32,136 nt of DNA from Utricularia gibba (Eukaryota > Plantae > Magnoliophyta): the NCBI GenBank assembly GCA_002189035.1, contig NEEC01000288.1:1-32136 (forward strand). Reading direction: 5' to 3'. A program made the translations under genes and the position numbers. How positions within the stretch are numbered: the first letter of the stretch is position 1; each line of letters starts with the position of its first letter. Under the pieces are notes generated by a model. That model had not been told where the DNA came from, ran no database searches, and saw nothing but the letters and a program-made list of their open reading frames with translations. Of this stretch, positions 1 through 30,800 are shown in pieces.

Positions 1-3000
1 AAAAATATACGCTCGATCCGCAGCATACCTAACGTTCGAATGCTAATAAAAAATATTAAAATAAAAAATACGCGCTCGATCCGCATTTATACTTAAGGAT
101 CGAATGATAATAAAAATATTTAAAGTAAAAAAATAGCAAATATGATCTGAATCATAACCAAGGATCGAATGCTAATTAAATTGACTAAAGTAAAAATACA
201 CACTCCATCCAAAGTACAACTGAGGATCAAATGGTAATAATTAAGTCAAAGAAGCTTTCACAGTTATCCTACGGTTTAATAAATAATGCATTTCAATTAT
301 TTATAATTTAATAAACCTATATCATATGATTATGATTAGAGATGGGCCTGGGTTGGATCCATTCAGGTTCGGACCCAACCCGATGAAATTCTGGGTATTA
401 CAGTTTGCATGACCCATGGGGTTGTCTTTCTGTTCAACCCGAACGGGTTAAACCCTACGGGTTTTGATTGGGCCCGAACCGAACCAAGGGTTTATCAATT
501 TTATTTTTTATTTTTGGCTTATTGTATTTTATGGGTTGTTTTCTTTTTTTCCACGGCCGTATGGCCTTGTGGCTGCTGCTCGAGCACGCGGGCATTAACC
601 AAGCCCATGTGGCCTCGTGGTGCTGCTGCGTATGCACACGGGCTGGGGGTCGCGCCGGGCATGAGCCCAAAGTCAGTTTTAGCCCGGCGAAAAAAGGGAT
701 GCATTTCTTAGCGTTGGGTTATCACGAGCCGCCTAATTTTTTTTCGTGGAACACCATCTAGTTTTGTGGGGGGCGCTCTCGAGGGGCCCTTGGCTTGGGC
801 CCCGGGTTCGGTCTGGCTGATGAGCCCACTCTGGTCCCACTCGGCGAAAATCGTGACACATTTGTTGAAATTAGGATGTCACGTGCACCCAACACGGTTT
901 TTTTCAACAACACGCTTTATACTTGTGGAGACGCTCTCGGGGGGCACTCGAATCTTCCCATACGTCGTACCAGGCTCGAGCGTAAAGTCATTGTAGCCCG
1001 GCAAAGAAAGTGATGCATTTATTAACTTTGGGTTGTCACGAGCCGCCTAAATGGTTTTCCATGGAACACCTTCTAGTTTTGGGGGGGAGGGGAGCGGGCG
1101 CTGCGCCTCGTCCGGGCCCCGGGAGCCCGGTCCCGTCCGACTCGACGAAAATCGTGATGCATTTGTTGAAGTTAGGATGTCACGAGAACCGCACACGGTT
1201 TTTTTCAACAACACACTTTATACTTAAGGAGGAGCTCTCGGGGGGGCACCCTGATCGGGCCGGAGGTCGTGCCGAACTCAGGCCCAAAGTCAGCAGTAGC
1301 GCGCCAAAAAAAGTGATGCATTATTAACGTTGGTTGTGACGAGACGCGTATATGGTTTTTGAAGGAACACCTCCTCGTATTGAGGCGGGCGCTCTCGAGG
1401 GGCCTTGGCCCGGGCCCCGGGTTCGGACGGGCTCATGGGCCCACTCGACGAAAATCATGATGCATTTGTTGAAATTGGGATGTCACGTGCACCCCACATT
1501 TGTTGAGCGAGGACGGCCAATTTTAGAGACTCGATGGGCCATTCTTCGATCAGCGTCCTACTATCTAGTTCAAACTCAAAGTCACATTATTCTTGCACAA
1601 TTTCGTATGAATGAATATGGGATATGATCCGTTGGAAGCCCAAGTGTTAGAGAATTTTACTGAATCTGCTGAGCAAGGGGTTGTGAGTTCATAACAGCTG
1701 TTGAAACCTCTCCAGGGTGGTGTGCGTGGCGTGATGAGCTTTCTACAATGACAAAAAAAAAATATTTTTATAATCATGTGATATATGTTTATTAAAATAT
1801 AAATAATGTAAATACGTTAGTTATTAAAGCATATACTACATGTGAAAGTTTCTTAGTTTTTAATTTTATTAGCATTCGACCCTTAGTTATACTTTGTTTA
1901 GATTCCAATCGAGTGTATATTTTTTATTTGAACGATTCTATTTGCATTCGATTCTAAGATATGATGCGGATCGAGCGTATATTTTTTATTTTAATATTTT
2001 TATTGGCTTTCGGTCTTTAGACATGATTCGGATCGAGTGGAGATGGTTTACTTGAAACTTGTGTTAACGCTCGATCCTTAGGAGCAATGTGGAGCGTGTT
2101 TACATTGCAAGGGCACACGGGCGTGGGTTGTGCGTAAACCACGCCCGTGTGGCATGGCATTGTAATGTATACACGTTCTAAATTGCTCCTAACGGTGGAA
2201 CGCTAATTAAGATTTAAAATAAATGAATATGCACTCGATCCAAAGTATACCTAAGGATCTAAGGCTAATAAAAATATGAGAGTGAAAAATATACGCTCGA
2301 TCCGCAGCATACCTAACGTTCGAATGCTAATAAAAAATATTAAAATAAAAAATACGCGCTCGATCCGCATTATACTTAAGGATCGAATGATAATAAAAAT
2401 ATTTAAAGTAAAAAAATAGCAAATATGATCTGAATCATAACCAAGGATCGAATGCTAATTAAATTGACTAAAGTAAAAATACACACTCCATCCAAAGTAC
2501 AACTGAGGATCAAATGGTAATAATTAAGTCAAAGAAGCTTTCACAGTTATCCTACGGTTTAATAAATAATGTATTTCAATTATTTATAATTTAATAAACC
2601 TATATCATATGATTATGATTAGAGAATGGGGGGTCCATTCAGGTTCGGACCCAACCCGATGAAATTCTGGGTATTACAGTTTGCATGACCCATGGGGTTG
2701 TCTTTCTGTTCAACCCGAACGGGTTAAACCCTACGGGTTTTGATTGGGCCGAACCGAACCAAGGTTTATCAATTTTATTTTTTATTTTTGGCTTATTGTA
2801 TTTATGGTTGTTTTTCTTTTTTCCACGGCCGTATGGCCTTGTGGCTGCTGCTCGAGCACGCGGCATTAACCAAGCCATGTGGCCTCGTGGTGCTGCTGCG
2901 TATGCACACGGGCTGGGGGTCGCGCCGGGCATGAGCCCAAAGTCAGTTTTAGCCCGGCGAAAAAAGGGATGCATTTCTTAGCGTTGGGTTATCACGAGCC

Positions 3001-6000
3001 GCCTAATTTTTTTTCGTGGAACACCATCTAGTTTTTTGGGGGGGCGCTCTCGAGGGGCCCTTGGCTTGGGCCCCGGGTTCGGTCTGGCTGATGAGCCCAC
3101 TCTGGTCCCACTCGGCGAAAATCGTGACACATTTGTTGAAATTAGGATGTCACGTGCACCCAACACGGTTTTTTCAACAACACGCTTTATACTTGTGGAG
3201 ACGCTCTCGGGGGGCACTCGAATCTTCCCATACGTCGTACCAGGCTCGAGCGTAAAGTCATTGTAGCCCGGCAAAGAAAGTGATGCATTTATTAACTTTG
3301 GGTTGTCACGAGCCGCCTAAATGGTTTTCCATGGAACACCTTCTAGTTTTGGGGGGGAGGGGAGCGGGCGCTGCGCCTCGTCCGGGCCCCGGGAGCCCGG
3401 TCCCGTCCGACTCGACGAAAATCGTGATGCATTTGTTGAAGTTAGGATGTCACGAGAACCGCACACCGTTTTTTTCAACAACACACTTTATACTTAAGGA
3501 GGAGCTCTCGGGGGGCACCCTGATCGGCCGGAGGTCGTGCCGAACTCGGGCCCAAAGTCAGCAGTAGCGCGCCAAAAAAAGTGATGCATTTATTAACGTT
3601 GGGTTGTGACGAGACGTATATGGTTTTTGAAGGAACACCTCCTCGTATTGAGGCGGGCGCTCTCGAGGGGCCCTTGGCCCGGGCCCCGGGTTCGGACGGG
3701 CTCATGGGCCCACTCGACGAAAATCATGATGCATTTGTTGAAATTGGGATGTCACGTGCACCCCACATTTGTTGAGCGAGGACGGCCAATTTTAGAGACT
3801 CGATGGGCCATTCTTCGATCAGCGTCCTACTATCTAGTTCAAACTCAAAGTCACATTATTCTTGCACAATTTCGTATGAATGAATATGGGATATGATCCG
3901 TTGGAAGCCCAAGTGTTAGAGAATTTTACTGAATCTGCTGAGCAAGGGGTTGTGAGTTCATAACAGCTGTTGAAACCTCTCCAGGGTGGTGTGCGTGGCG
4001 TGATGAGCTTTCTACAATGACAAAAAAATATTTTTATAATCATGTGATATATGTTTATTAAAATATAAATAATGTAAATACGTTAGTTATTAAAGCATAT
4101 ACTACATGTGAAAGTTTCTTAGTTTTAATTTTATTAGCATTCGACCCTTAGTTATACTTTGGATGGAGTGTGCATTTTTATTTTAATCATTTTAATTAGC
4201 ATTCGATCCTTGGTTAGATTCCAATCGAGTGTATATTTTTATTTGAACGATTCTATTTGCATTCGATTCTAAGATATGATGCGGATCGAGCGTATATTTT
4301 TTATTTTAATATTTTTATTGGCTTTCGGTCTTTAGACATGATTCGGATCGAGTGGAGATGGTTTACTTGAAACTTGTGTTAACGCTCGATCCTTAGGAGC
4401 AATGTGGAGCGTGTTTACATTGCAAGGGCACACGGGCGTGGGTTGTGCGTAAACCACGCCCGTGTGGCATGGCATTGTAATGTATACACGTTCTAAATTG
4501 CTCCTAACGGTGGAACGCTAATTAAGATTTAAAATAAATGAATATGCACTCGATCCAAAGTATACCTAAGGATCTAAGGCTAATAAAAATATGAGAGTGA
4601 AAAATATACGCTCGATCCGCAGCATACCTAACGTTCGAATGCTAATAAAAATATTAAAATAAAAAATACGCGCTCGATCCGCATTATACTTAAGGATCGA
4701 ATGATAATAAAAATATTTAAAGTAAAAAAATAGCAAATATGATCTGAATCATAACCAAGGATCGAATGCTAATTAAATTGACTAAAGTAAAAATACACAC
4801 TCCATCCAAAGTACAACTGAGGATCAAATGGTAATAATTAAGTCAAAGAAGCTTTCACAGTTATCCTACGGTTTAATAAATAATGTATTTCAATTATTTA
4901 TAATTTAATAAACCTATATCATATGATTATGATTAGAGATGGGCCTGGGTTGGATCCATTCAGGTTCGGACCCAACCCGATGAAATTCTGGGTATTACAG
5001 TTTGCATGACCCATGGGGTTGTCTTTCTGTTCAACCCGAACGGGTTAAACCCTACGGGTTTTGATTGGGCCCGAACCGAACCAAGGGTTTATCAATTTTA
5101 TTTTTTATTTTTGGCTTATTGTATTTTATGGTTGTTTTTCTTTTTTCCACGGCCGTATGGCCTTGTGGCTGCTGCTCGAGCACGCGGGCATTAACCAAGC
5201 CCATGTGGCCTCGTGGTGCTGCTGCGTATGCACACGGGCTGGGGGTCGCGCCGGGCATGAGCCCAAAGTCAGTTTTTAGCCCGGCGAAAAAAGGGATGCA
5301 TTTCTTAGCGTTGGGTTATCACGAGCCGCCTAATTTTTTTTCGTGGAACACCATCTAGTTTTGTGGGGGGCGCTCTCGAGGGGCCTTGGCTTGGGCCCCG
5401 GGTTCGGTCTGGCTGATGAGCCCACTCTGGTCCCACTCGGCGAAAATCGTGACACATTTGTTGAAATTAGGATGTCACGTGCACCCAACACGGTTTTTTC
5501 AACAACACGCTTTATACTTGTGGAGACGCTCTCGGGGGGCACTCGAATCTTCCCATACGTCGTACCAGGCTCGAGCGTAAAGTCATTGTAGCCCGGCAAA
5601 GAAAGTGATGCATTTATTAACTTTGGGTTGTCACGAGCGCCTAAATGGTTTTCCATGGAACACCTTCTAGTTTTGGGGGGAGGGGAGCGGGCGCTGCGCC
5701 TCGTCCGGGCCCCGGGAGCCCGGTCCCGTCCGACTCGACGAAAATCGTGATGCATTTGTTGAAGTTAGGATGTCACGAGAACCGCACACCGTTTTTTTCA
5801 ACAACACACTTTATACTTAAGGAGGAGCTCTCGGGGGGCACCTGATCGGCCGGAGGTCGTGCCGAACTCGGGCCCAAAGTCAGCAGTAGCGCGCCAAAAA
5901 AAGTGATGCATTTATTAACGTTGGGTTGTGACGAGACGCGTATATGGTTTTTGAAGGAACACCTCCTCGTATTGAGGCGGGCGCTCTCGAGGGGCCCTTG

Positions 6001-9000
6001 GCCCGGGCCCCGGGTTCGGACGGGCTCATGGGCCCACTCGACGAAAATCATGATGCATTTGTTGAAATTGGGATGTCACGTGCACCCCACATTTGTTGAG
6101 CGAGGACGGCCAATTTTAGAGACTCGATGGGCCATTCTTCGATCAGCGTCCTACTATCTAGTTCAAACTCAAAGTCACATTATTCTTGCACAATTTCGTA
6201 TGAATGAATATGGGATATGATCCGTTGGAAGCCCAAGTGTTAGAGAATTTTACTGAATCTGCTGAGCAAGGGTTGTGAGTTCATAACAGCTGTTGAAACC
6301 TCTCCAGGGTGGTGTGTGGCGTGATGAGCTTTCTACAATGACAAAAAAAATATTTTTATAATCATGTGATATATGTTTATTAAAATATAAATAATGTAAA
6401 TACGTTAGTTATTAAAGCATATACTACATGTGAAAGTTTCTTAGTTTTTAATTTTATTAGCATTCGACCCTTAGTTATACTTTGGATGGAGTGTGCATTT
6501 TTATTTTAATCATTTTAATTAGCATTCGATCCTTGGTTAGATTCCAATCGAGTGTATATTTTTATTTGAACGATTCTATTTGCATTCGATTCTAAGATAT
6601 GATGCGGATCGAGCGTATATTTTTTATTTTAATATTTTATTGGCTTTCGGTCTTTAGACATGATTCGGATCGAGTGGAGATGGTTTACTTGAAACTTGTG
6701 TTAACGCTCGATCCTTAGGAGCAATGTGGAGCGTGTTTACATTGCAAGGGCACACGGGCGTGGGTTGTGCGTAAACCACGCCCGTGTGGCATGGCATTGT
6801 AATGTATACACGTTCTAAATTGCTCCTAACGGTGGAACGCTAATTAAGATTTAAAATAAATGAATATGCACTCGATCCAAAGTATACCTAAGGATCTAAG
6901 GCTAATAAAAATATGAGAGTGAAAAATATACGCTCGATCCGCAGCATACCTAACGTTCGAATGCTAATAAAAATATTAAAATAAAAATACGCGCGCTCGA
7001 TCCGCATTATACTTAAGGATCGAATGATAATAAAATATTTAAAGTAAAAAAATAGCAAATATGATCTGAATCATAACCAAGGATCGAATGCTAATTAAAT
7101 TGACTAAAGTAAAAATACACACTCCATCCAAAGTACAACTGAGGATCAAATGGTAATAATTAAGTCAAAGAAGCTTTCACAGTTATCCTACGGTTTAATA
7201 AATAATGTATTTCAATTTTTATAATTTAATAAACCTATATCATTGATTATGATTAGAGATGGGCCTGGGTTGGATCCATTCAGGTTCGGACCCAACCCGA
7301 TGAAATTCTGGGTATTACAGTTTGCATGACCCATGGGGTTGTCTTTCTGTTCAACCCGAACGGGTTAAACCCTACGGGTTTTGATTGGGCCCGAACCGAA
7401 CCAAGGGTTTATCAATTTTATTTTTTATTTTTGGCTTATTGTATTTTATGGTTGTTTTCTTTTTTTTCCACGGCCGTATGGCCTTGTGGCTGCTGCTCGA
7501 GCACGCGGGCATTAACCAAGCCCATGTGGCCTCGTGGTGCTGCTGCGTATGCACACGGGCTGGGGGTCGCGCCGGGCATGAGCCCAAAGTCAGTTTTAGC
7601 CCGGCGAAAAAAAGGATGCATTTCTTAGCGTTGGGTTATCACGAGCCGCCTAATTTTTTTTCGTGGAACACCATCTAGTTTTGTGGGGGGGCGCTCTCGA
7701 GGGGCCCTTGCTTGGGCCCCGGGTTCGGTCTGGCTGATGAGCCCACTCTGGTCCCACTCGGCGAAAATCGTGACACATTTGTTGAAATTAGGATGTCACG
7801 TGCACCCAACACGGTTTTTTCAACAACACGCTTTATACTTGTGGAGACGCTCGGGGGGCACTCGAATCTTCCCATACGTCGTACCAGGCTCGAGCGTAAA
7901 GTCATTGTAGCCCGGCAAAGAAAGTGATGCATTTATTAACTTTGGGTTGTCACGAGCCGCCTAAATGGTTTTCCATGGAACACCTTCTAGTTTTGGGGGG
8001 AGGGGAGCGGGCGCTGCCTCGCCTCCGGGCCCCGGGAGCCCGGTCCCGTCCGACTCGACGAAAATCGTGATGCATTTGTTGAAGTTAGGATGTCACGAGA
8101 ACCGCACACCGTTTTTTTCAACAAACACACTTTATACTTAAGGAGGAGCTCTCGGGGGGGCACCCTGATCGGGCCGGAGGTCGTGCCGAACTCGGCCCAA
8201 AGTCAGCAGCAGTAGCGCGCCAAAAAAAGTGATGCATTTATTAACGTTGGGTTGTGACGAGACGCGTATATGGTTTTTGAAGGAACACCTCCTCGTATTG
8301 AGGCGGGCGCTCTCGAGGGGCCCTTGGCCCGGGCCCCGGGTTCGGACGGGCTCATGGGCCCACTCGACGAAAATCATGATGCATTTGTTGAAATTGGGAT
8401 GTCACGTGCACCCCACATTTGTTGAGCGAGGACGGCCAATTTTAGAGACTCGATGGGCCATTCTTCGATCAGCGTCCTACTATCTAGTTCAAACTCAAAG
8501 TCACATTATTCTTGCACAATTTCGTATGAATGAATATGGGATATGATCCGTTGGAAGCCCAAGTGTTAGAGAATTTTACTGAATCTGCTGAGCAAGGGGT
8601 TGTGAGTTCATAACAGCTGTTGAAACCTCTCCAGGGTGGTGTGCGTGGCTGATGCTTTCTACAATGACAAAAAAATATTTTTATAATCATGTGATATATG
8701 TTTATTAAAATATAAATAATGTAAATACGTTAGTTATTAAAGCATATACTACATGTGAAAGTTTCTTAGTTTTTAATTTTATTAGCATTCGACCCTTAGT
8801 TATACTTTGGATGGAGTGTGCATTTTTATTTTAATCATTTTAATTAGCATTCGATCCTTGGTTAAGATTCCAATCGAGTGTATATTTTTTATTTTGAACG
8901 ATTCTATTTGCATTCGATTCTAAGATATGATGCGGATCGAGCGTATATTTTTTATTTTAATATTTTTATTGGCTTTCGGTCTTTAGACATGATTCGGATC

Positions 9001-12000
9001 GAGTGGAGATGGTTTACTTGAAACTTGTGTTAACGCTCGATCCTTAGGAGCAATGTGGAGCGTGTTTACATTGCAAGGGCACACGGGCGTGGGTTGTGCG
9101 TAAACCACGCCCGTGTGGCATGGCATTGTAATGTATACACGTTCTAAATTGCTCCTAACGGTGGAACGCTAATTAAGATTTAAAATAAATGAATATGCAC
9201 TCGATCCAAAGTATACCTAAGGATCTAAGGCTAATAAAAATATGAGAGTGAAAAATATACGCTCGATCCGCAGCATACCTAACGTTCGAATGCTAATAAA
9301 AAATATTAAAATAAAAAATACGCGCTCGATCCGCATTATACTTAAGGATCGAATGATAATAAAAATATTTAAAGTAAAAAAATAGCAAATATGATCTGAA
9401 TCATAACCAAGGATCGAATGCTAATTAAATTGACTAAAGTAAAAATACACACTCCATCCAAAGTACAACTGAGGATCAAATGGTAATAATTAAGTCAAAG
9501 AAGCTTTCACAGTTATCCTACGGTTTAATAAATAATGTATTTCAATTATTTATAATTTAATAAACCTATATCATATGATTATGATTAGAGATGGGCCTGG
9601 GTTGGATCCATTCAGGTTCGGACCCAACCCGATGAAATTCTGGGTATTACAGTTTGCATGACCCATGGGGTTGTCTTTCTGTTCAACCCGAACGGGTTAA
9701 ACCCTACGGGTTTTGATTGGGCCCGAACCGAACCAAGGGTTTATCAATTTTATTTTTTATTTTTGGCTTATTGTATTTTATGGTGTTTTTTCTTTTTTTC
9801 CACGGCCGTATGGCCTTGTGGCTGCTGCTCGAGCACGCGGGCATTAACCAAGCCCATGTGGCCTCGTGGTGCTGCTGCGTATGCACACGGGCTGGGGTCG
9901 CGCCGGGCATGAGCCCAAAGTCAGTTTTAGCCCGGCGAAAAAAGGGATGCATTTCTTAGCGTTGGGTTATCACGAGCCGCCTAATTTTTTTTCGTGGAAC
10001 ACCATCTAGTTTTGTGGGGGGGCGCTCTCGAGGGGCCCTTGGCTTGGGCCCCGGGTTCGGTCTGGCTGATGAGCCCACTCTGGTCCCACTCGGCGAAAAT
10101 CGTGACACATTTGTTGAAATTAGGATGTCACGTGCACCCAACACGGTTTTTTTCAACAACACGCTTTATACTTGTGGAGACGCTCTCGGGGGGCACTCGA
10201 ATCTTCCCATACGTCGTACCAGGCTCGAGCGTAAAGTCATTGTAGCCCGGCAAAGAAAGTGATGCATTTATTAACTTTGGGTTGTCACGAGCCGCCTAAA
10301 TGGTTTTCCATGGAACACCTTCTAGTTTTGGGGGGGAGGGGAGCGGGCGCTGCGCCTCGTCCGGGCCCCGGGAGCCCGGTCCCGTCCGACTCGACGAAAA
10401 TCGTGATGCATTTGTTGAAGTTAGGATGTCACGAGAACCGCACACGGTTTTTTTCAACAACACACTTTATACTTAAGGAGGAGCTCTCGGGGGGCACCCT
10501 GATCGAGCCGGAGGTCGTGCCGAACTCAGGCCCAAAGTCAGCAGTAGCGCGCCAAAAAAAGTGATGCATTTATTAACGTTGGGTTGTGACGAGACGCGTA
10601 TATGGTTTTTGAAGGAACACCTCCTCGTATTGAGGCGGGCGCTCTCGAGGGGCCCTTGGCCCGGGCCCCGGGTTCGGACGGGCTCATGGGCCCACTCGAC
10701 GAAAATCATGATGCATTTGTTGAAATTGGGATGTCACGTGCACCCCACATTTGTTGAGCGAGGACGGCCAATTTTAGAGACTCGATGGGCCATTCTTCGA
10801 TCAGCGTCCTACTATCTAGTTCAAACTCAAAGTCACATTATTCTTGCACAATTTCGTATGAATGAATATGGGATATGATCCGTTGGAAGCCCAAGTGTTA
10901 GAGAATTTTACTGAATCTGCTGAGCAAGGGGTTGTGAGTTCATAACAGCTGTTGAAACCTCTCCAGGGTGGTGTGCGTGGCGTGATGAGCTTTCTACAAT
11001 GACAAAAAAAATATTTTTATAATCATGTGATATATGTTTATTAAAATATAAATAATGTAAATACGTTAGTTATTAAAGCATATACTACATGTGAAAGTTT
11101 CTTAGTTTTTAATTTTATTAGCATTCGACCCTTAGTTATACTTTGGATGGAGTGTGCATTTTTATTTTAATCATTTTAATTAGCATTCGATCCTTGGTTA
11201 AGATTCCAATCGAGTGTATATTTTTTATTTGAACGATTCTATTTGCATTCGATTCTAAGATATGATGCGGATCGAGCGTATATTTTTTATTTTAATATTT
11301 TTATTGGCTTTCGGTCTTTAGACATGATTCGGATCGAGTGGAGATGGTTTACTTGAAACTTGTGTTAACGCTCGATCCTTAGGAGCAATGTGGAGCGTGT
11401 TTACATTGCAAGGGCACACGGGCGTGGGTTGTGCGTAAACCACGCCCGTGTGGCATGGCATTGTAATGTATACACGTTCTAAATTGCTCCTAACGGTGGA
11501 ACGCTAATTAAGATTTAAAATAAATGAATATGCACTCGATCCAAAGTATACCTAAGGATCTAAGGCTAATAAAAATATGAGAGTGAAAAATATACGCTCG
11601 ATCCGCAGCATACCTAACGTTCGAATGCTAATAAAAAATATTAAAATAAAAAATACGCGCTCGATCCGCATTATACTTAAGGATCGAATGATAATAAAAA
11701 TATTTAAAGTAAAAAAATAGCAAATATGATCTGAATCATAACCAAGGATCGAATGCTAATTAAATTGACTAAAGTAAAAATACACACTCCATCCAAAGTA
11801 CAACTGAGGATCAAATGGTAATAATTAAGTCAAAGAAGCTTTCACAGTTATCCTACGGTTTAATAAATAATGTATTTCAATTATTTATAATTTAATAAAC
11901 CTATATCATATGATTATGATTAGAGATGGGCCTGGGTTGGATCCATTCAGGTTCGGACCCAACCCGATGAAATTCTGGGTATTACAGTTTGCATGACCCA

Positions 12001-15000: not shown

Positions 15001-16701
15001 GGGGAGGGAGCGGGCGCTGCGCCTCGTCCGGGCCCCGGGAGCCCGGTCCCGTCCGACTCGACGAAAATCGTGATGCATTTGTTGAAGTTAGGATGTCACG
15101 AGAACCGCACACGGTTTTTTTCAACAACACACTTTATACTTAAGGAGGAGCTCTCGGTGGGGCACCCTGATCGAGCCGGAGGTCGTGCCGAACTCAGGCC
15201 CAAAGTCAGCAGTAGCGCGCCAAAAAAAGTGATGCATTTATTAACGTTGGGTTGTGACGAGACGCGTATATGGTTTTTGAAGGAACACCTCCTCGTATTG
15301 AGGCGGGCGCTCTCGAGGGGCCCTTGGCCCGGGCCCCGGGTTCGGACGGGCTCATGGGCCCACTCGACGAAAATCATGATGCATTTGTTGAAATTGGGAT
15401 GTCACGTGCACCCCACATTTGTTGAGCGAGGACGGCCAATTTTAGAGACTCGATGGGCCATTCTTCGATCAGCGTCCTACTATCTAGTTCAAACTCAAAG
15501 TCACATTATTCTTGCACAATTTCGTATGAATGAATATGGGATATGATCCGTTGGAAGCCCAAGTGTTAGAGAATTTTACTGAATCTGCTGAGCAAGGGGT
15601 TGTGAGTTCATAACAGCTGTTGAAACCTCTCCAGGGTGGTGTGCGTGGCGTGATGAGCTTTCTACAATGACAAAAAAAATATTTTTATAATCATGTGATA
15701 TATGTTTATTAAAATATAAATAATGTAAATACGTTAGTTATTAAAGCATATACTACATGTGAAAGTTTCTTAGTTTTTAATTTTATTAGCATTCGACCCT
15801 TAGTTATACTTTGGATGGAGTGTGCATTTTTATTTTAATCATTTTAATTAGCATTCGATCCTTGGTTAAGATTCCAATCGAGTGTATATTTTTTATTTGA
15901 ACGATTCTATTTGCATTCGATTCTAAGATATGATGCGGATCGAGCGTATATTTTTTATTTTAATATTTTTATTGGCTTTCGGTCTTTAGACATGATTCGG
16001 ATCGAGTGGAGATGGTTTACTTGAAACTTGTGTTAACGCTCGATCCTTAGGAGCAATGTGGAGCGTGTTTACATTGCAAGGGCACACGGGCGTGGGTTGT
16101 GCGTAAACCACGCCCGTGTGGCATGGCATTGTAATGTATACACGTTCTAAATTGCTCCTAACGGTGGAACGCTAATTAAGATTTAAAATAAATGAATATG
16201 CACTCGATCCAAAGTATACCTAAGGATCTAAGGCTAATAAAAATATGAGAGTGAAAAATATACGCTCGATCCGCAGCATACCTAACGTTCGAATGCTAAT
16301 AAAAAATATTAAAATAAAAAATACGCGCTCGATCCGCATTATACTTAAGGATCGAATGATAATAAAAATATTTAAAGTAAAAAAATAGCAAATATGATCT
16401 GAATCATAACCAAGGATCGAATGCTAATTAAATTGACTAAAGTAAAAATACACACTCCATCCAAAGTACAACTGAGGATCAAATGGTAATAATTAAGTCA
16501 AAGAAGCTTTCACAGTTATCCTACGGTTTAATAAATAATGTATTTCAATTATTTATAATTTAATAAACCTATATCATATGATTATGATTAGAGATGGGCC
16601 TGGGTTGGATCCATTCAGGTTCGGACCCAACCCGATGAAATTCTGGGTATTACAGTTTGCATGACCCATGGGGTTGTCTTTCTGTTCAACCCGAACGGGT
16701 T

Positions 16702-16709
16702 AAACCCTA
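16702..16709 (+). promoter_or_regulatory. Telo-box motif AAACCCTA (one per monomer; 450-457 in copy 1)
   Basis: Exact match to the plant telo-box. Function is untested. Confidence 0.35.
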
Positions 16710-16720
16710 CGGGTTTTGAT

Positions 16721-16726
16721 TGGGCC
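16721..16726 (+). promoter_or_regulatory. Site II motif TGGGCC (second copy at 16595-16600)
   Basis: Exact match to the TCP-binding site II consensus TGGGCY, starting 12 bp after the telo-box. A hexamer can occur by chance. Confidence 0.3.
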
Positions 16727-16812
16727 CGAACCGAACCAAGGGTTTATCAATTTTATTTTTTATTTTTGGCTTATTGTATTTTATGGTTGTTTTTCTTTTT
16801 TTCCACGGCCGT

Positions 16813-16895
16813 ATGGCCTTGTGGCTGCTGCTCGAGCACGCGGGCATTAACCAAGCCCATGTGGCCTCGTGGTGCTGCTGCGTATGCACACGGGC
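16813..16895 (+). repeat. Two-copy degenerate direct repeat, 48-bp offset
   Basis: ATGGCCTTGTGGCTGCTGCTCGAGCACGCGGGC (16813-16845) versus GTGGCCTCGTGGTGCTGCTGCGTATGCACACGGGC (16861-16895). Confidence 0.8.
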
Positions 16896-16896
16896 T

Positions 16897-17760
16897 GGGG
16901 GTCGCGCCGGGCATGAGCCCAAAGTCAGTTTTAGCCCGGCGAAAAAAGGGATGCATTTCTTAGCGTTGGGTTATCACGAGCCGCCTAATTTTTTTTCGTG
17001 GAACACCATCTAGTTTTGTGGGGGGGCGCTCTCGAGGGGCCCTTGGCTTGGGCCCCGGGTTCGGTCTGGCTGATGAGCCCACTCTGGTCCCACTCGGCGA
17101 AAATCGTGACACATTTGTTGAAATTAGGATGTCACGTGCACCCAACACGGTTTTTTCAACAACACGCTTTATACTTGTGGAGACGCTCTCGGGGGGCACT
17201 CGAATCTTCCCATACGTCGTACCAGGCTCGAGCGTAAAGTCATTGTAGCCCGGCAAAGAAAGTGATGCATTTATTAACTTTGGGTTGTCACGAGCCGCCT
17301 AAATGGTTTTCCATGGAACACCTTCTAGTTTTGGGGGGGAGGGGAGCGGGCGCTGCGCCTCGTCCGGGCCCCGGGAGCCCGGTCCCGTCCGACTCGACGA
17401 AAATCGTGATGCATTTGTTGAAGTTAGGATGTCACGAGAACCGCACACGGTTTTTTTCAACAACACACTTTATACTTAAGGAGGAGCTCTCGGTGGGGCA
17501 CCCTGATCGAGCCGGAGGTCGTGCCGAACTCAGGCCCAAAGTCAGCAGTAGCGCGCCAAAAAAAGTGATGCATTTATTAACGTTGGGTTGTGACGAGACG
17601 CGTATATGGTTTTTGAAGGAACACCTCCTCGTATTGAGGCGGGCGCTCTCGAGGGGCCCTTGGCCCGGGCCCCGGGTTCGGACGGGCTCATGGGCCCACT
17701 CGACGAAAATCATGATGCATTTGTTGAAATTGGGATGTCACGTGCACCCCACATTTGTTG
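16897..17760 (+). repeat. GC-rich block of ~150-bp subrepeats in an alternating A/B (~305-bp dimer) pattern
   Basis: GATGCATTT-like anchors at 16950 (A), 17108 (B), 17264 (A), 17408 (B), 17567 (A) and 17714 (B); spacing 158, 156, 144, 159, 147. A type continues TATTAAC.TTGGGTTGT(C/G)ACGAG and B type TGTTGAA.TT(A/G)GGATGTCACG. Copy 1 equivalent is ~646-1510. Confidence 0.92.
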
Positions 17761-18109
17761 AGCGAGGACGGCCAATTTTAGAGACTCGATGGGCCATTCT
17801 TCGATCAGCGTCCTACTATCTAGTTCAAACTCAAAGTCACATTATTCTTGCACAATTTCGTATGAATGAATATGGGATATGATCCGTTGGAAGCCCAAGT
17901 GTTAGAGAATTTTACTGAATCTGCTGAGCAAGGGGTTGTGAGTTCATAACAGCTGTTGAAACCTCTCCAGGGTGGTGTGCGTGGCGTGATGAGCTTTCTA
18001 CAATGACAAAAAAAATATTTTTATAATCATGTGATATATGTTTATTAAAATATAAATAATGTAAATACGTTAGTTATTAAAGCATATACTACATGTGAAA
18101 GTTTCTTAG

Positions 18110-18350
18110 TTTTTAATTTTATTAGCATTCGACCCTTAGTTATACTTTGGATGGAGTGTGCATTTTTATTTTAATCATTTTAATTAGCATTCGATCCTTG
18201 GTTAAGATTCCAATCGAGTGTATATTTTTTATTTGAACGATTCTATTTGCATTCGATTCTAAGATATGATGCGGATCGAGCGTATATTTTTTATTTTAAT
18301 ATTTTTATTGGCTTTCGGTCTTTAGACATGATTCGGATCGAGTGGAGATG
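18110..18350 (-). repeat. Four ~62-bp modules (inverted orientation) in the left palindrome arm
   Basis: GGATCGAG-like cores at 18149, 18211, 18273 and 18335; spacing exactly 62. Confidence 0.9.
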
Positions 18351-18382
18351 GTTTACTTGAAACTTGTGTTAACGCTCGATCC

Positions 18383-18497
18383 TTAGGAGCAATGTGGAGC
18401 GTGTTTACATTGCAAGGGCACACGGGCGTGGGTTGTGCGTAAACCACGCCCGTGTGGCATGGCATTGTAATGTATACACGTTCTAAATTGCTCCTAA
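18383..18497. other. 115-nt central hairpin at the palindrome axis
   Basis: TTAGGAGCAAT/ATTGCTCCTAA is a perfect 11-bp stem. The next 22 positions give 17 Watson-Crick pairs, 3 G.U pairs and 2 mismatches. The inner perfect 13-bp stem is CACACGGGCGTGG (18419-18431)/CCACGCCCGTGTG (18444-18456), with loop GTGCGT at 18435-18440. Confidence 0.92.
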
Positions 18498-27800: not shown

Positions 27801-30800
27801 TGTATACACGTTCTAAATTGCTCCTAACGGTGGAACGCTAATTAAGATTTAAAATAAATGAATATGCACTCGATCCAAAGTATACCTAAGGATCTAAGGC
27901 TAATAAAAATATGAGAGTGAAAAATATACGCTCGATCCGCAGCATACCTAACGTTCGAATGCTAATAAAAAATATTAAAATAAAAAATACGCGCTCGATC
28001 CGCATTATACTTAAGGATCGAATGATAATAAAAATATTTAAAGTAAAAAAATAGCAAATATGATCTGAATCATAACCAAGGATCGAATGCTAATTAAATT
28101 GACTAAAGTAAAAATACACACTCCATCCAAAGTACAACTGAGGATCAAATGGTAATAATTAAGTCAAAGAAGCTTTCACAGTTATCCTACGGTTTAATAA
28201 ATAATGTATTTCAATTATTTATAATTTAATAAACCTATATCATATGATTATGATTAGAGATGGGCCTGGGTTGGATCCATTCAGGTTCGGACCCAACCCG
28301 ATGAAATTCTGGGTATTACAGTTTGCATGACCCATGGGGTTGTCTTTCTGTTCAACCCGAACGGGTTAAACCCTACGGGTTTTGATTGGGCCCGAACCGA
28401 ACCAAGGGTTTATCAATTTTATTTTTTATTTTTGGCTTATTGTATTTTATGGTTGTTTTCTTTTTTTCCACGGCCGTATGGCCTTGTGGCTGCTGCTCGA
28501 GCACGCGGGCATTAACCAAGCCCATGTGGCCTCGTGGTGCTGCTGCGTATGCACACGGGCTGGGGTCGCGCCGGGCATGAGCCCAAAGTCAGTTTTAGCC
28601 CGGCGAAAAAAGGGATGCATTTCTTAGCGTTGGGTTATCACGAGCCGCCTAATTTTTTTTCGTGGAACACCATCTAGTTTTGTGGGGGGGCGCTCTCGAG
28701 GGGCCCTTGGCTTGGGCCCCGGGTTCGGTCTGGCTGATGAGCCCACTCTGGTCCCACTCGGCGAAAATCGTGACACATTTGTTGAAATTAGGATGTCACG
28801 TGCACCCAACACGGTTTTTTCAACAACACGCTTTATACTTGTGGAGACGCTCTCGGGGGGCACTCGAATCTTCCCATACGTCGTACCAGGCTCGAGCGTA
28901 AAGTCATTGTAGCCCGGCAAAGAAAGTGATGCATTTATTAACTTTGGGTTGTCACGAGCCGCCTAAATGGTTTTCCATGGAACACCTTCTAGTTTTGGGG
29001 GGGAGGAGCGGGCGCTGCGCCTCGTCCGGGCCCCGGGAGCCCGGTCCCGTCCGACTCGACGAAAATCGTGATGCATTTGTTGAAGTTAGGATGTCACGAG
29101 AACCGCACACGGTTTTTTTTCAACAACACACTTTATACTTAAGGAGGAGCTCTCGGTGGGGCACCCTGATCGAGCCGGAGGTCGTGCCGAACTCAGGCCC
29201 AAAGTCAGCAGTAGCGCGCCAAAAAAAGTGATGCATTTATTAACGTTGGGTTGTGACGAGACGCGTATATGGTTTTTGAAGGAACACCTCCTCGTATTGA
29301 GGCGGGCGCTCTCGAGGGGCCCTTGGCCCGGGCCCCGGGTTCGGACGGGCTCATGGGCCCACTCGACGAAAATCATGATGCATTTGTTGAAATTGGGATG
29401 TCACGTGCACCCCACATTTGTTGAGCGAGGACGGCCAATTTTAGAGACTCGATGGGCCATTCTTCGATCAGCGTCCTACTATCTAGTTCAAACTCAAAGT
29501 CACATTATTCTTGCACAATTTCGTATGAATGAATATGGGATATGATCCGTTGGAAGCCCAAGTGTTAGAGAATTTTACTGAATCTGCTGAGCAAGGGGTT
29601 GTGAGTTCATAACAGCTGTTGAAACCTCTCCAGGTGGTGTGCGTGGCGTGATGAGCTTTCTACAATGACAAAAAAAAATATTTTTATAATCATGTGATAT
29701 ATGTTTATTAAAATATAAATAATGTAAATACGTTAGTTATTAAAGCATATACTACATGTGAAAGTTTCTTAGTTTTTAATTTTATTAGCATTCGACCCTT
29801 AGTTATACTTTGGATGGAGTGTGCATTTTTATTTTAATCATTTTAATTAGCATTCGATCCTTGGTTAAGATTCCAATCGAGTGTATATTTTTTATTTGAA
29901 CGATTCTATTTGCATTCGATTCTAAGATATGATGCGGATCGAGCGTATATTTTTTATTTTAATATTTTTATTGGCTTTCGGTCTTTAGACATGATTCGGA
30001 TCGAGTGGAGATGGTTTACTTGAAACTTGTGTTAACGCTCGATCCTTAGGAGCAATGTGGAGCGTGTTTACATTGCAAGGGCACACGGGCGTGGGTTGTG
30101 CGTAAACCACGCCGTGTGGCATGGCATTGTAATGTATACACGTTCTAAATTGCTCCTAACGGTGGAACGCTAATTAAGATTTAAAATAAATGAATATGCA
30201 CTCGATCCAAAGTATACCTAAGGATCTAAGGCTAATAAAAATATGAGAGTGAAAAATATACGCTCGATCCGCAGCATACCTAACGTTCGAATGCTAATAA
30301 AAAATATTAAAATAAAAAATACGCGCTCGATCCGCATTATACTTAAGGATCGAATGATAATAAAAATATTTAAAGTAAAAAAATAGCAAATATGATCTGA
30401 ATCATAACCAAGGATCGAATGCTAATTAAATTGACTAAAGTAAAAATACACACTCCATCCAAAGTACAACTGAGGATCAAATGGTAATAATTAAGTCAAA
30501 GAAGCTTTCACAGTTATCCTACGGTTTAATAAATAATGTATTTCAATTATTTATAATTTAATAAACCTATATCATATGATTATGATTAGAGATGGGCCTG
30601 GGTTGGATCCATTCAGGTTCGGACCCAACCCGATGAAATTCTGGGTATTACAGTTTGCATGACCCATGGGGTTGTCTTTCTGTTCAACCCGAACGGGTTA
30701 AACCCTACGGGTTTTGATTGGGCCCGAACCGAACCAAGGGTTTATCAATTTTATTTTTTATTTTTGGCTTATTGTATTTTATGGTTGTCTTTCTTTTTTT

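Follow-up and report, generated by a model that had tools for sequence, protein, structure and literature searches.

The window analyzed here, a 32,136-bp stretch of Utricularia gibba DNA, is occupied from end to end by a single array of tandem repeats of about 2,334 bp, as seen both in its composition profile and with Tandem Repeats Finder (TRF). Each 2.33-kb unit contains a 0.9-kb hairpin-forming palindrome that is real and far beyond chance. We consider it probable that the array is a recently amplified mosaic macrosatellite in which an older, foldback-type palindrome is a passenger. An earlier note on this sequence read the unit inside out, as a long-TIR element whose copies are joined end to end at the palindrome centers. 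The anatomy of the unit, the relative ages of its parts and the position-by-position pairing of its subrepeats, all of which bear on this choice, can be read directly from the DNA and are described first.

The tandem array and its monomer

The array (1-32136) comprises approximately 13.8 copies of the monomer and overruns both ends of the window; it is given without strand, and all features described below are on the forward strand. The first nucleotide of the window corresponds to 16254, within a right arm of the palindrome, and the last one lies within a left arm. The motif that marks the palindrome center occurs 13 times, from 2133 to 30101, with a spacing of 2,315-2,336 bp.

Uniformity was assessed by aligning the 12 monomers that extend from one center to the next. 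Variable columns number 97 in this alignment; 62 of these are indels, nearly all of a single nucleotide. Monomers m4 to m12 differ on average by 1.2 substitutions over 2.3 kb (a divergence of about 0.05%), with five monomers showing none, and m1 to m3 are shorter and noisier. The variants at 17449 and 17532 are true ones, shared between some of the in-phase copies. The array thus described has the features of a macrosatellite: a head-to-tail, non-coding unit of kilobase scale, with high identity between units and devoid of coding signal. A search of the array against Rfam matched no family.

The palindrome and the DNA between palindromes

We use the palindrome at 15687-16585 as reference. Its left arm (15687-16098) spans 412 nt and its right arm (16105-16585) 481 nt, on either side of a 6-nt loop, GTGCGT (16099-16104), which is identical in all 13 copies. 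The next palindrome has its left arm at 18023-18434 and its loop at 18435-18440. The earlier note had placed inverted arms at 16105-16585 and 18023-18434, enclosing 1,437 bp, and these coordinates are exact. The central GTGCGT that it described is found at both loop positions, and pairing does run right up to the loop, with one mismatch among the first 16 positions.

Folded as single-stranded DNA, the segment 15660-16612 forms one long hairpin, paired from 15687 through 16585, with an energy of -232.6 kcal/mol, compared to -84.9 +/- 4.4 for shuffled sequences (z = -33). Alignment of the two arms leads to the same conclusion: the score is 328 in inverted orientation, against 24 in direct orientation and 22 +/- 2.6 for shuffles. 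About 84% of the aligned arm columns are identical over a palindrome of approximately 0.9 kb in total. The right arm contains an extra block of about 67 nt, equivalent to one module, which adjoins the central domain.

Three domains follow one another from the center outward in each arm, in the order given by the earlier note (unique end, 62-bp modules, AT-rich part). The unique central domain (16052-16098 on the left, 16105-16156 on the right) measures 48-51 bp, with a GC content of 45-56%; it had been put at about 90 bp, and the measured length is closer to 50 bp. The second domain consists of tandem 62-bp modules, about 4.4 in the left arm (15780-16051) and about five in the right arm (16157-16470), covering 272-314 bp with 30-32% GC. 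The outer domain (15687-15779 and 16471-16585) is non-modular and AT-rich, with 18-23% GC over 93-115 bp. Modules match by position across the arms, with values of 0.90 for L5/R5, 0.84 for L3/R3 and 0.71 for L4/R4, and the rearranged, least-conserved modules are those that adjoin the palindrome center. Each module has a short inverted core of its own, GGATCGA ... TCGATCC. By analogy, these cores seem similar to motifs that recur in the TIRs of Galileo, Tetris and Tm1 and are bound by transposase.

The outer edges of the palindrome are discrete. They had been described as fading out; instead, the outermost 50 arm columns are the best-paired stretch of all (88%), the first eight positions all pair, and pairing falls to chance immediately beyond ATAATCAT/ATGATTAT, with 4 of 10, 5 of 20, 9 of 30 and 16 of 50 positions complementary past the edge. 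The claim that these edges bear no TSD stands, as no convincing duplication is present there: the best candidate, TTATAA/TTATGA, matches at five of six positions and is equalled in 15% of random placements. Arm identity in successive segments, starting at the outer edge, is about 88-91, 70, 90, 71, 84, 69 and 83%. A gradient of arm conservation was considered as an indicator of phase and set aside, since these values are not monotonic.

Taken as a candidate foldback element, the segment 15687-16585 thus displays long, multi-domain inverted arms including tandem subrepeats, as well as discrete termini, of which the right one lies 3 bp from a transposon-like terminus and could be a breakpoint. 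It is flanked by no TSD of the kind found in Tetris and Tm1 (8-10 bp).

The 1.44 kb between two palindromes is a patchwork. It opens with a segment resembling an orphan transposon end (16589-16750), which begins TAGAGATGGGCC 3 bp past the palindrome edge and contains CGGGTT/AACCCG hexamers in both orientations. By comparison with TIR consensus sequences, this end may be a hAT-type terminus. No partner TIR for this TAGAG... end was found within the monomer when up to four mismatches were allowed. A T-rich and GC-rich spacer separates it from an older GC-rich satellite (16891-17762), in which A and B units of about 150 bp form dimers of about 300 bp, with approximately three dimers in all. TRF reports a period of 298-302 here, and five families of direct repeats (D1-D5) are spaced by 300-315 and 159 bp. 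Next comes a unique tail, about 260 bp long (17763-18022), which ends in an A/T run right before the following palindrome.

An open frame of 46 codons (17742-17882) extends into the tail. It was considered as a candidate dead PIF/Harbinger transposase tail, given a likeness to such tails; Pfam, the word-indexed protein search and the atlas gave no match in support of this idea. More generally, the ORFs of the enclosed region have no relatives in the same three resources, a 206-aa ORF has none in the word-indexed protein search, and six ATG-started ORFs have no exact match in a collection of 15 billion proteins. Since the enclosed ORFs lack relatives in these searches and lie among a transposon-like end and subrepeats, the interior is not gene-fragment cargo; it looks like heterochromatic debris rather than captured genes. 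The Pack-MULE-like cargo proposed in the earlier note is therefore not borne out, with no gene fragment found in the 1,437 bp. A Pack-MULE was also rejected as a candidate for the whole unit, as its interior holds no gene fragment and neither a TSD nor a spacer of 9-11 bp is present.

Origin of the palindrome and of the array

Two observations order the events. The arms of the palindrome differ by at least 16%, plus the 67-nt block, against a divergence of about 0.05% between monomers. This places the origin of the palindrome long before the last round of amplification, unless concerted evolution has kept a long-lived array uniform. In addition, since modules pair by position across the arms, the 62-bp array had diversified before it was duplicated in inverted orientation.

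We infer from this anatomy that the palindrome is a passenger of transposon origin, and propose the following scenario. Before amplification, the palindrome would already have been an old, imperfect inverted duplication of a diversified array of 62-bp modules, most probably a foldback-type element or MITE that is no longer active, or otherwise a local inverted duplication. It would have lain in a heterochromatic mosaic together with the orphan transposon-like end, about six 150-bp satellite units and the unique tail, and a 2.33-kb stretch of this mosaic would then have been amplified head to tail as a single unit. Unequal exchange or replication-based amplification are likely routes, and rolling-circle copying of an extrachromosomal circle, opened in an arbitrary phase, is a possible one. 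Amplification would have been very recent, or homogenization very efficient. The discrete and well conserved outer edges, which are like conventional foldback termini, count in favor of this scenario, as does the remainder of the monomer, in which unrelated pieces without coding relatives stand side by side. Read from the outside, the domain order of the palindrome also agrees with that of canonical foldback elements (PMC4079207). The lack of a flanking TSD counts against it, as does the absence of any solitary copy of the palindrome from the window, and so does the right edge: arm homology ends no more than 3 bp from the orphan transposon-like terminus, so that the sharpness of this edge could be that of an insertion breakpoint.

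The same lack of a TSD would be natural if the palindrome had never been mobile. It would then have arisen by local inverted duplication of a segment containing a 62-bp minisatellite, for instance through template switching or hairpin-capped break repair, and would later have been swept into the amplified unit. A tiny loop, with rearranged and least-conserved modules beside the center, is what one expects of stabilized palindromes. The absence of relatives in the collections searched is also consistent with this history, and carries little weight since plant DNA is scarce or absent in these: a motif shared by the left and right arms had no exact match in metagenome, prokaryote-genome and viral contigs, and a gapped motif from the central domain had none in metagenome contigs. 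Against this history, the three-domain arms contain repeated GGATCGA ... TCGATCC cores, which resemble the subterminal repeats to which transposase binds in foldback, Galileo and Tm1-type elements. We regard a never-mobile palindrome as possible, although rather unlikely.

A tandem array is circularly permuted, so that a monomer with an internal palindrome and an end-to-end series of long-TIR elements are one and the same sequence. Read inside out, the monomer would be a complete, non-autonomous foldback-type element of 2.33 kb with TIRs of 481 and 412 bp around a 1,437-bp interior, the left arm and loop of the next palindrome (18023-18440) becoming the 3' TIR and a spacer. Head-to-tail joining would have resulted from double insertion at one site, or from circularization followed by rolling-circle copying, and each junction would consist of TIR, spacer and TIR. 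Several features agree with this reading: the sharp center; the same 6-nt spacer at 13 of 13 junctions, like in the hobo array of strain I03; the putative termini, ...GGGCGTGG(GTT) and (AAA)CCACGCCC..., which are complementary at 15 of 16 positions; a domain order that, read from the center, also suits a foldback TIR; and outer edges without TSD. The nearness of the right edge to the orphan transposon-like terminus, which may make this edge an insertion breakpoint and not the end of an element, also leaves room for it.

We looked for an internal asymmetry between the two phases, and the features examined in the window favor neither. The termini at the outer edges are just as good a pair, again with 15 of 16 positions complementary, and the foldback domain order appears, on comparison with known elements, to fit equally well from either side of an arm. 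An identical spacer at all junctions is also what any amplified unit would give. As center and outer edge are equally sharp, the asymmetry from which the inside-out reading was drawn is absent. Other observations are adverse. We know of no plant superfamily whose usual TSD length is 6 nt, or 12 nt with GTT/AAA counted, and the termini carry no superfamily motif that we recognize. The interior is made of satellite and transposon debris, not of gene fragments. TIRs at 84% identity beside monomers at more than 99.9% would imply a junction made by transposase and then a long period of concerted evolution. Finally, neither a solitary copy nor an autonomous partner is known. In our judgment, this reading is improbable.

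Least credible of all is an artefact of assembly, in which the array itself, or the close identity between its monomers, would have been produced by collapsed or over-polished long reads: the prevalence of 1-nt indels among inter-monomer differences (62 of 97 variable columns) and the noisier first three monomers, typical of the vicinity of a contig end, point in this direction, but 13 in-phase copies with a few true variants in common (17449 and 17532) argue against it and the palindrome, which sits within the monomer, cannot stem from mis-joining.

Comparison with known systems

Under the preferred reading, a mosaic macrosatellite with a passenger palindrome, the array would be one more composite satellite. 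Long composite monomers are known in plants, an example being the St-type centromeric repeats of potato, which measure 1-5 kb. Like these, the array has a kilobase-scale monomer built from transposon and other debris and is very homogeneous; unlike the 2.33-kb monomer, the potato repeats derive mainly from retrotransposons. What sets the present array apart is a strongly hairpin-prone palindrome of 0.9 kb that recurs at 2.33-kb intervals over tens of kilobases, and we know of no report of a composite plant satellite with such a palindrome in every unit. The array is thus a natural test case for the tolerance of plant chromosomes to long palindromes, and its hairpins may give rise to small RNAs.

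The mechanism by which the inside-out reading turns a transposon into an array is already known from Drosophila, as are satellites derived from foldback elements (Tetris). Drosophila arrays of whole DNA transposons include that of hobo in strain I03, P-element tandems and the heterochromatic Bari1 cluster (McGurk & Barbash 2018, PMC5932611). In the hobo array, one 8-nt motif, hobo's duplication, is present at every junction; double insertion followed by expansion has been shown in Drosophila, and, for Bari1, a rolling-circle mode of replication has been put forward (PMC5932611). If the inside-out reading were true, the Utricularia array would resemble these in having a whole TIR element as monomer and one identical short spacer per junction, and in having expanded by unequal exchange or rolling-circle copying. 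It would differ in several respects. hobo, P and Bari1 are known to be mobile and have copies dispersed in the genome, with a spacer that is the TSD of the family (8 nt for hobo), whereas here the spacer is 6 nt and we know of no dispersed copy, family or transposase. In addition, the TIRs would be 0.4-0.5 kb long, creating a 0.9-kb palindrome at each junction. In that event, the Drosophila route from transposon to satellite would extend to plants and to long-TIR elements, the array would be, to our knowledge, the first example in plants of an entire DNA transposon turned into a macrosatellite, and it would form a ready-made series of cruciform-prone sites.

The palindrome itself is best compared to foldback transposons, whose canonical organization comprises flanking, tandem-repeat, inner and middle domains (PMC4079207). 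Modular TIRs are found in Drosophila FB, Galileo, Tetris and Tm1, and in the plant elements FARE, SoFT and Tnr8. The palindrome shares with these elements long imperfect arms in which a unique flanking domain, tandem subrepeats and an inner domain succeed one another, a number of modules that is unequal between arms and a lack of coding capacity. It departs from them in that it has no TSD, which is 8-10 bp in Tetris and Tm1, and in that its middle domain is reduced to 6 nt; furthermore, no second locus is known, and its sequence is not similar to the families tested.

The TIR-220 satellite of Drosophila virilis, which derives from Tetris, also places a foldback-type sequence within a satellite array (PMC4079207). 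In Tetris, however, it is an internal 220-bp subrepeat that became the satellite, whereas in Utricularia the 62-bp modules stay at four to five per arm and the whole palindrome-containing unit of 2.33 kb was amplified (PMC4079207 for Tetris).

Hairpins within the palindrome

Within each 62-bp module of the palindrome arms (window 16157-16470 and 15780-16051), an AT-rich spacer is flanked by the module's 7-bp inverted core, GGATCGA ... TCGATCC, and the module is therefore a small hairpin within the large one. Each central domain, adjoining the 6-nt loop, also contains a 7-bp hairpin, GCAATGT / ACATTGC. Across the 13 palindrome centres, a single difference is observed: at the final one (window 30091-30135), the right half-site has lost 1 nt, giving CCACGCC-GTG.

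Palindrome right edge and remaining monomer segments

Only 3 bp past the right edge of the palindrome begins a transposon-terminus-like sequence (window 16586-16750), which starts with TAGAGATGGGCC and in which CGGGTT/AACCCG hexamers are present. No partner TIR was found in the monomer for this TAGAGATGGGCC terminus-like sequence. The point where arm homology stops may be an insertion breakpoint.

Further along, the tail part of a 46-codon open frame (window 17742-17882) is reminiscent of the C terminus of PIF/Harbinger transposases from plants; identification as such a transposase tail was supported by neither Pfam, word search nor atlas. Every monomer also harbors about three dimers of 300 bp (window 16891-17762), built from an older A/B repeat of about 150 bp. 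Copies of this repeat are 60-89% alike, a divergence far above that observed between monomers.

Variation and composition along the array

The first three centre-to-centre monomers, m1, m2 and m3 (window 1-9098), are shorter (2315, 2322 and 2329 bp, respectively) and noisier than the others. They contain numerous 1-nt deletions and, in m3, clustered substitutions adjoining indels; a few variants (17449, 17532) are common to all three. This noise could reflect either poorer consensus quality close to a contig end or older variants on one of the array's sides. GC skew is positive in all 1-kb bins (0.03-0.125; window 1-32136), so that the plus strand of the whole monomer favors G over C.
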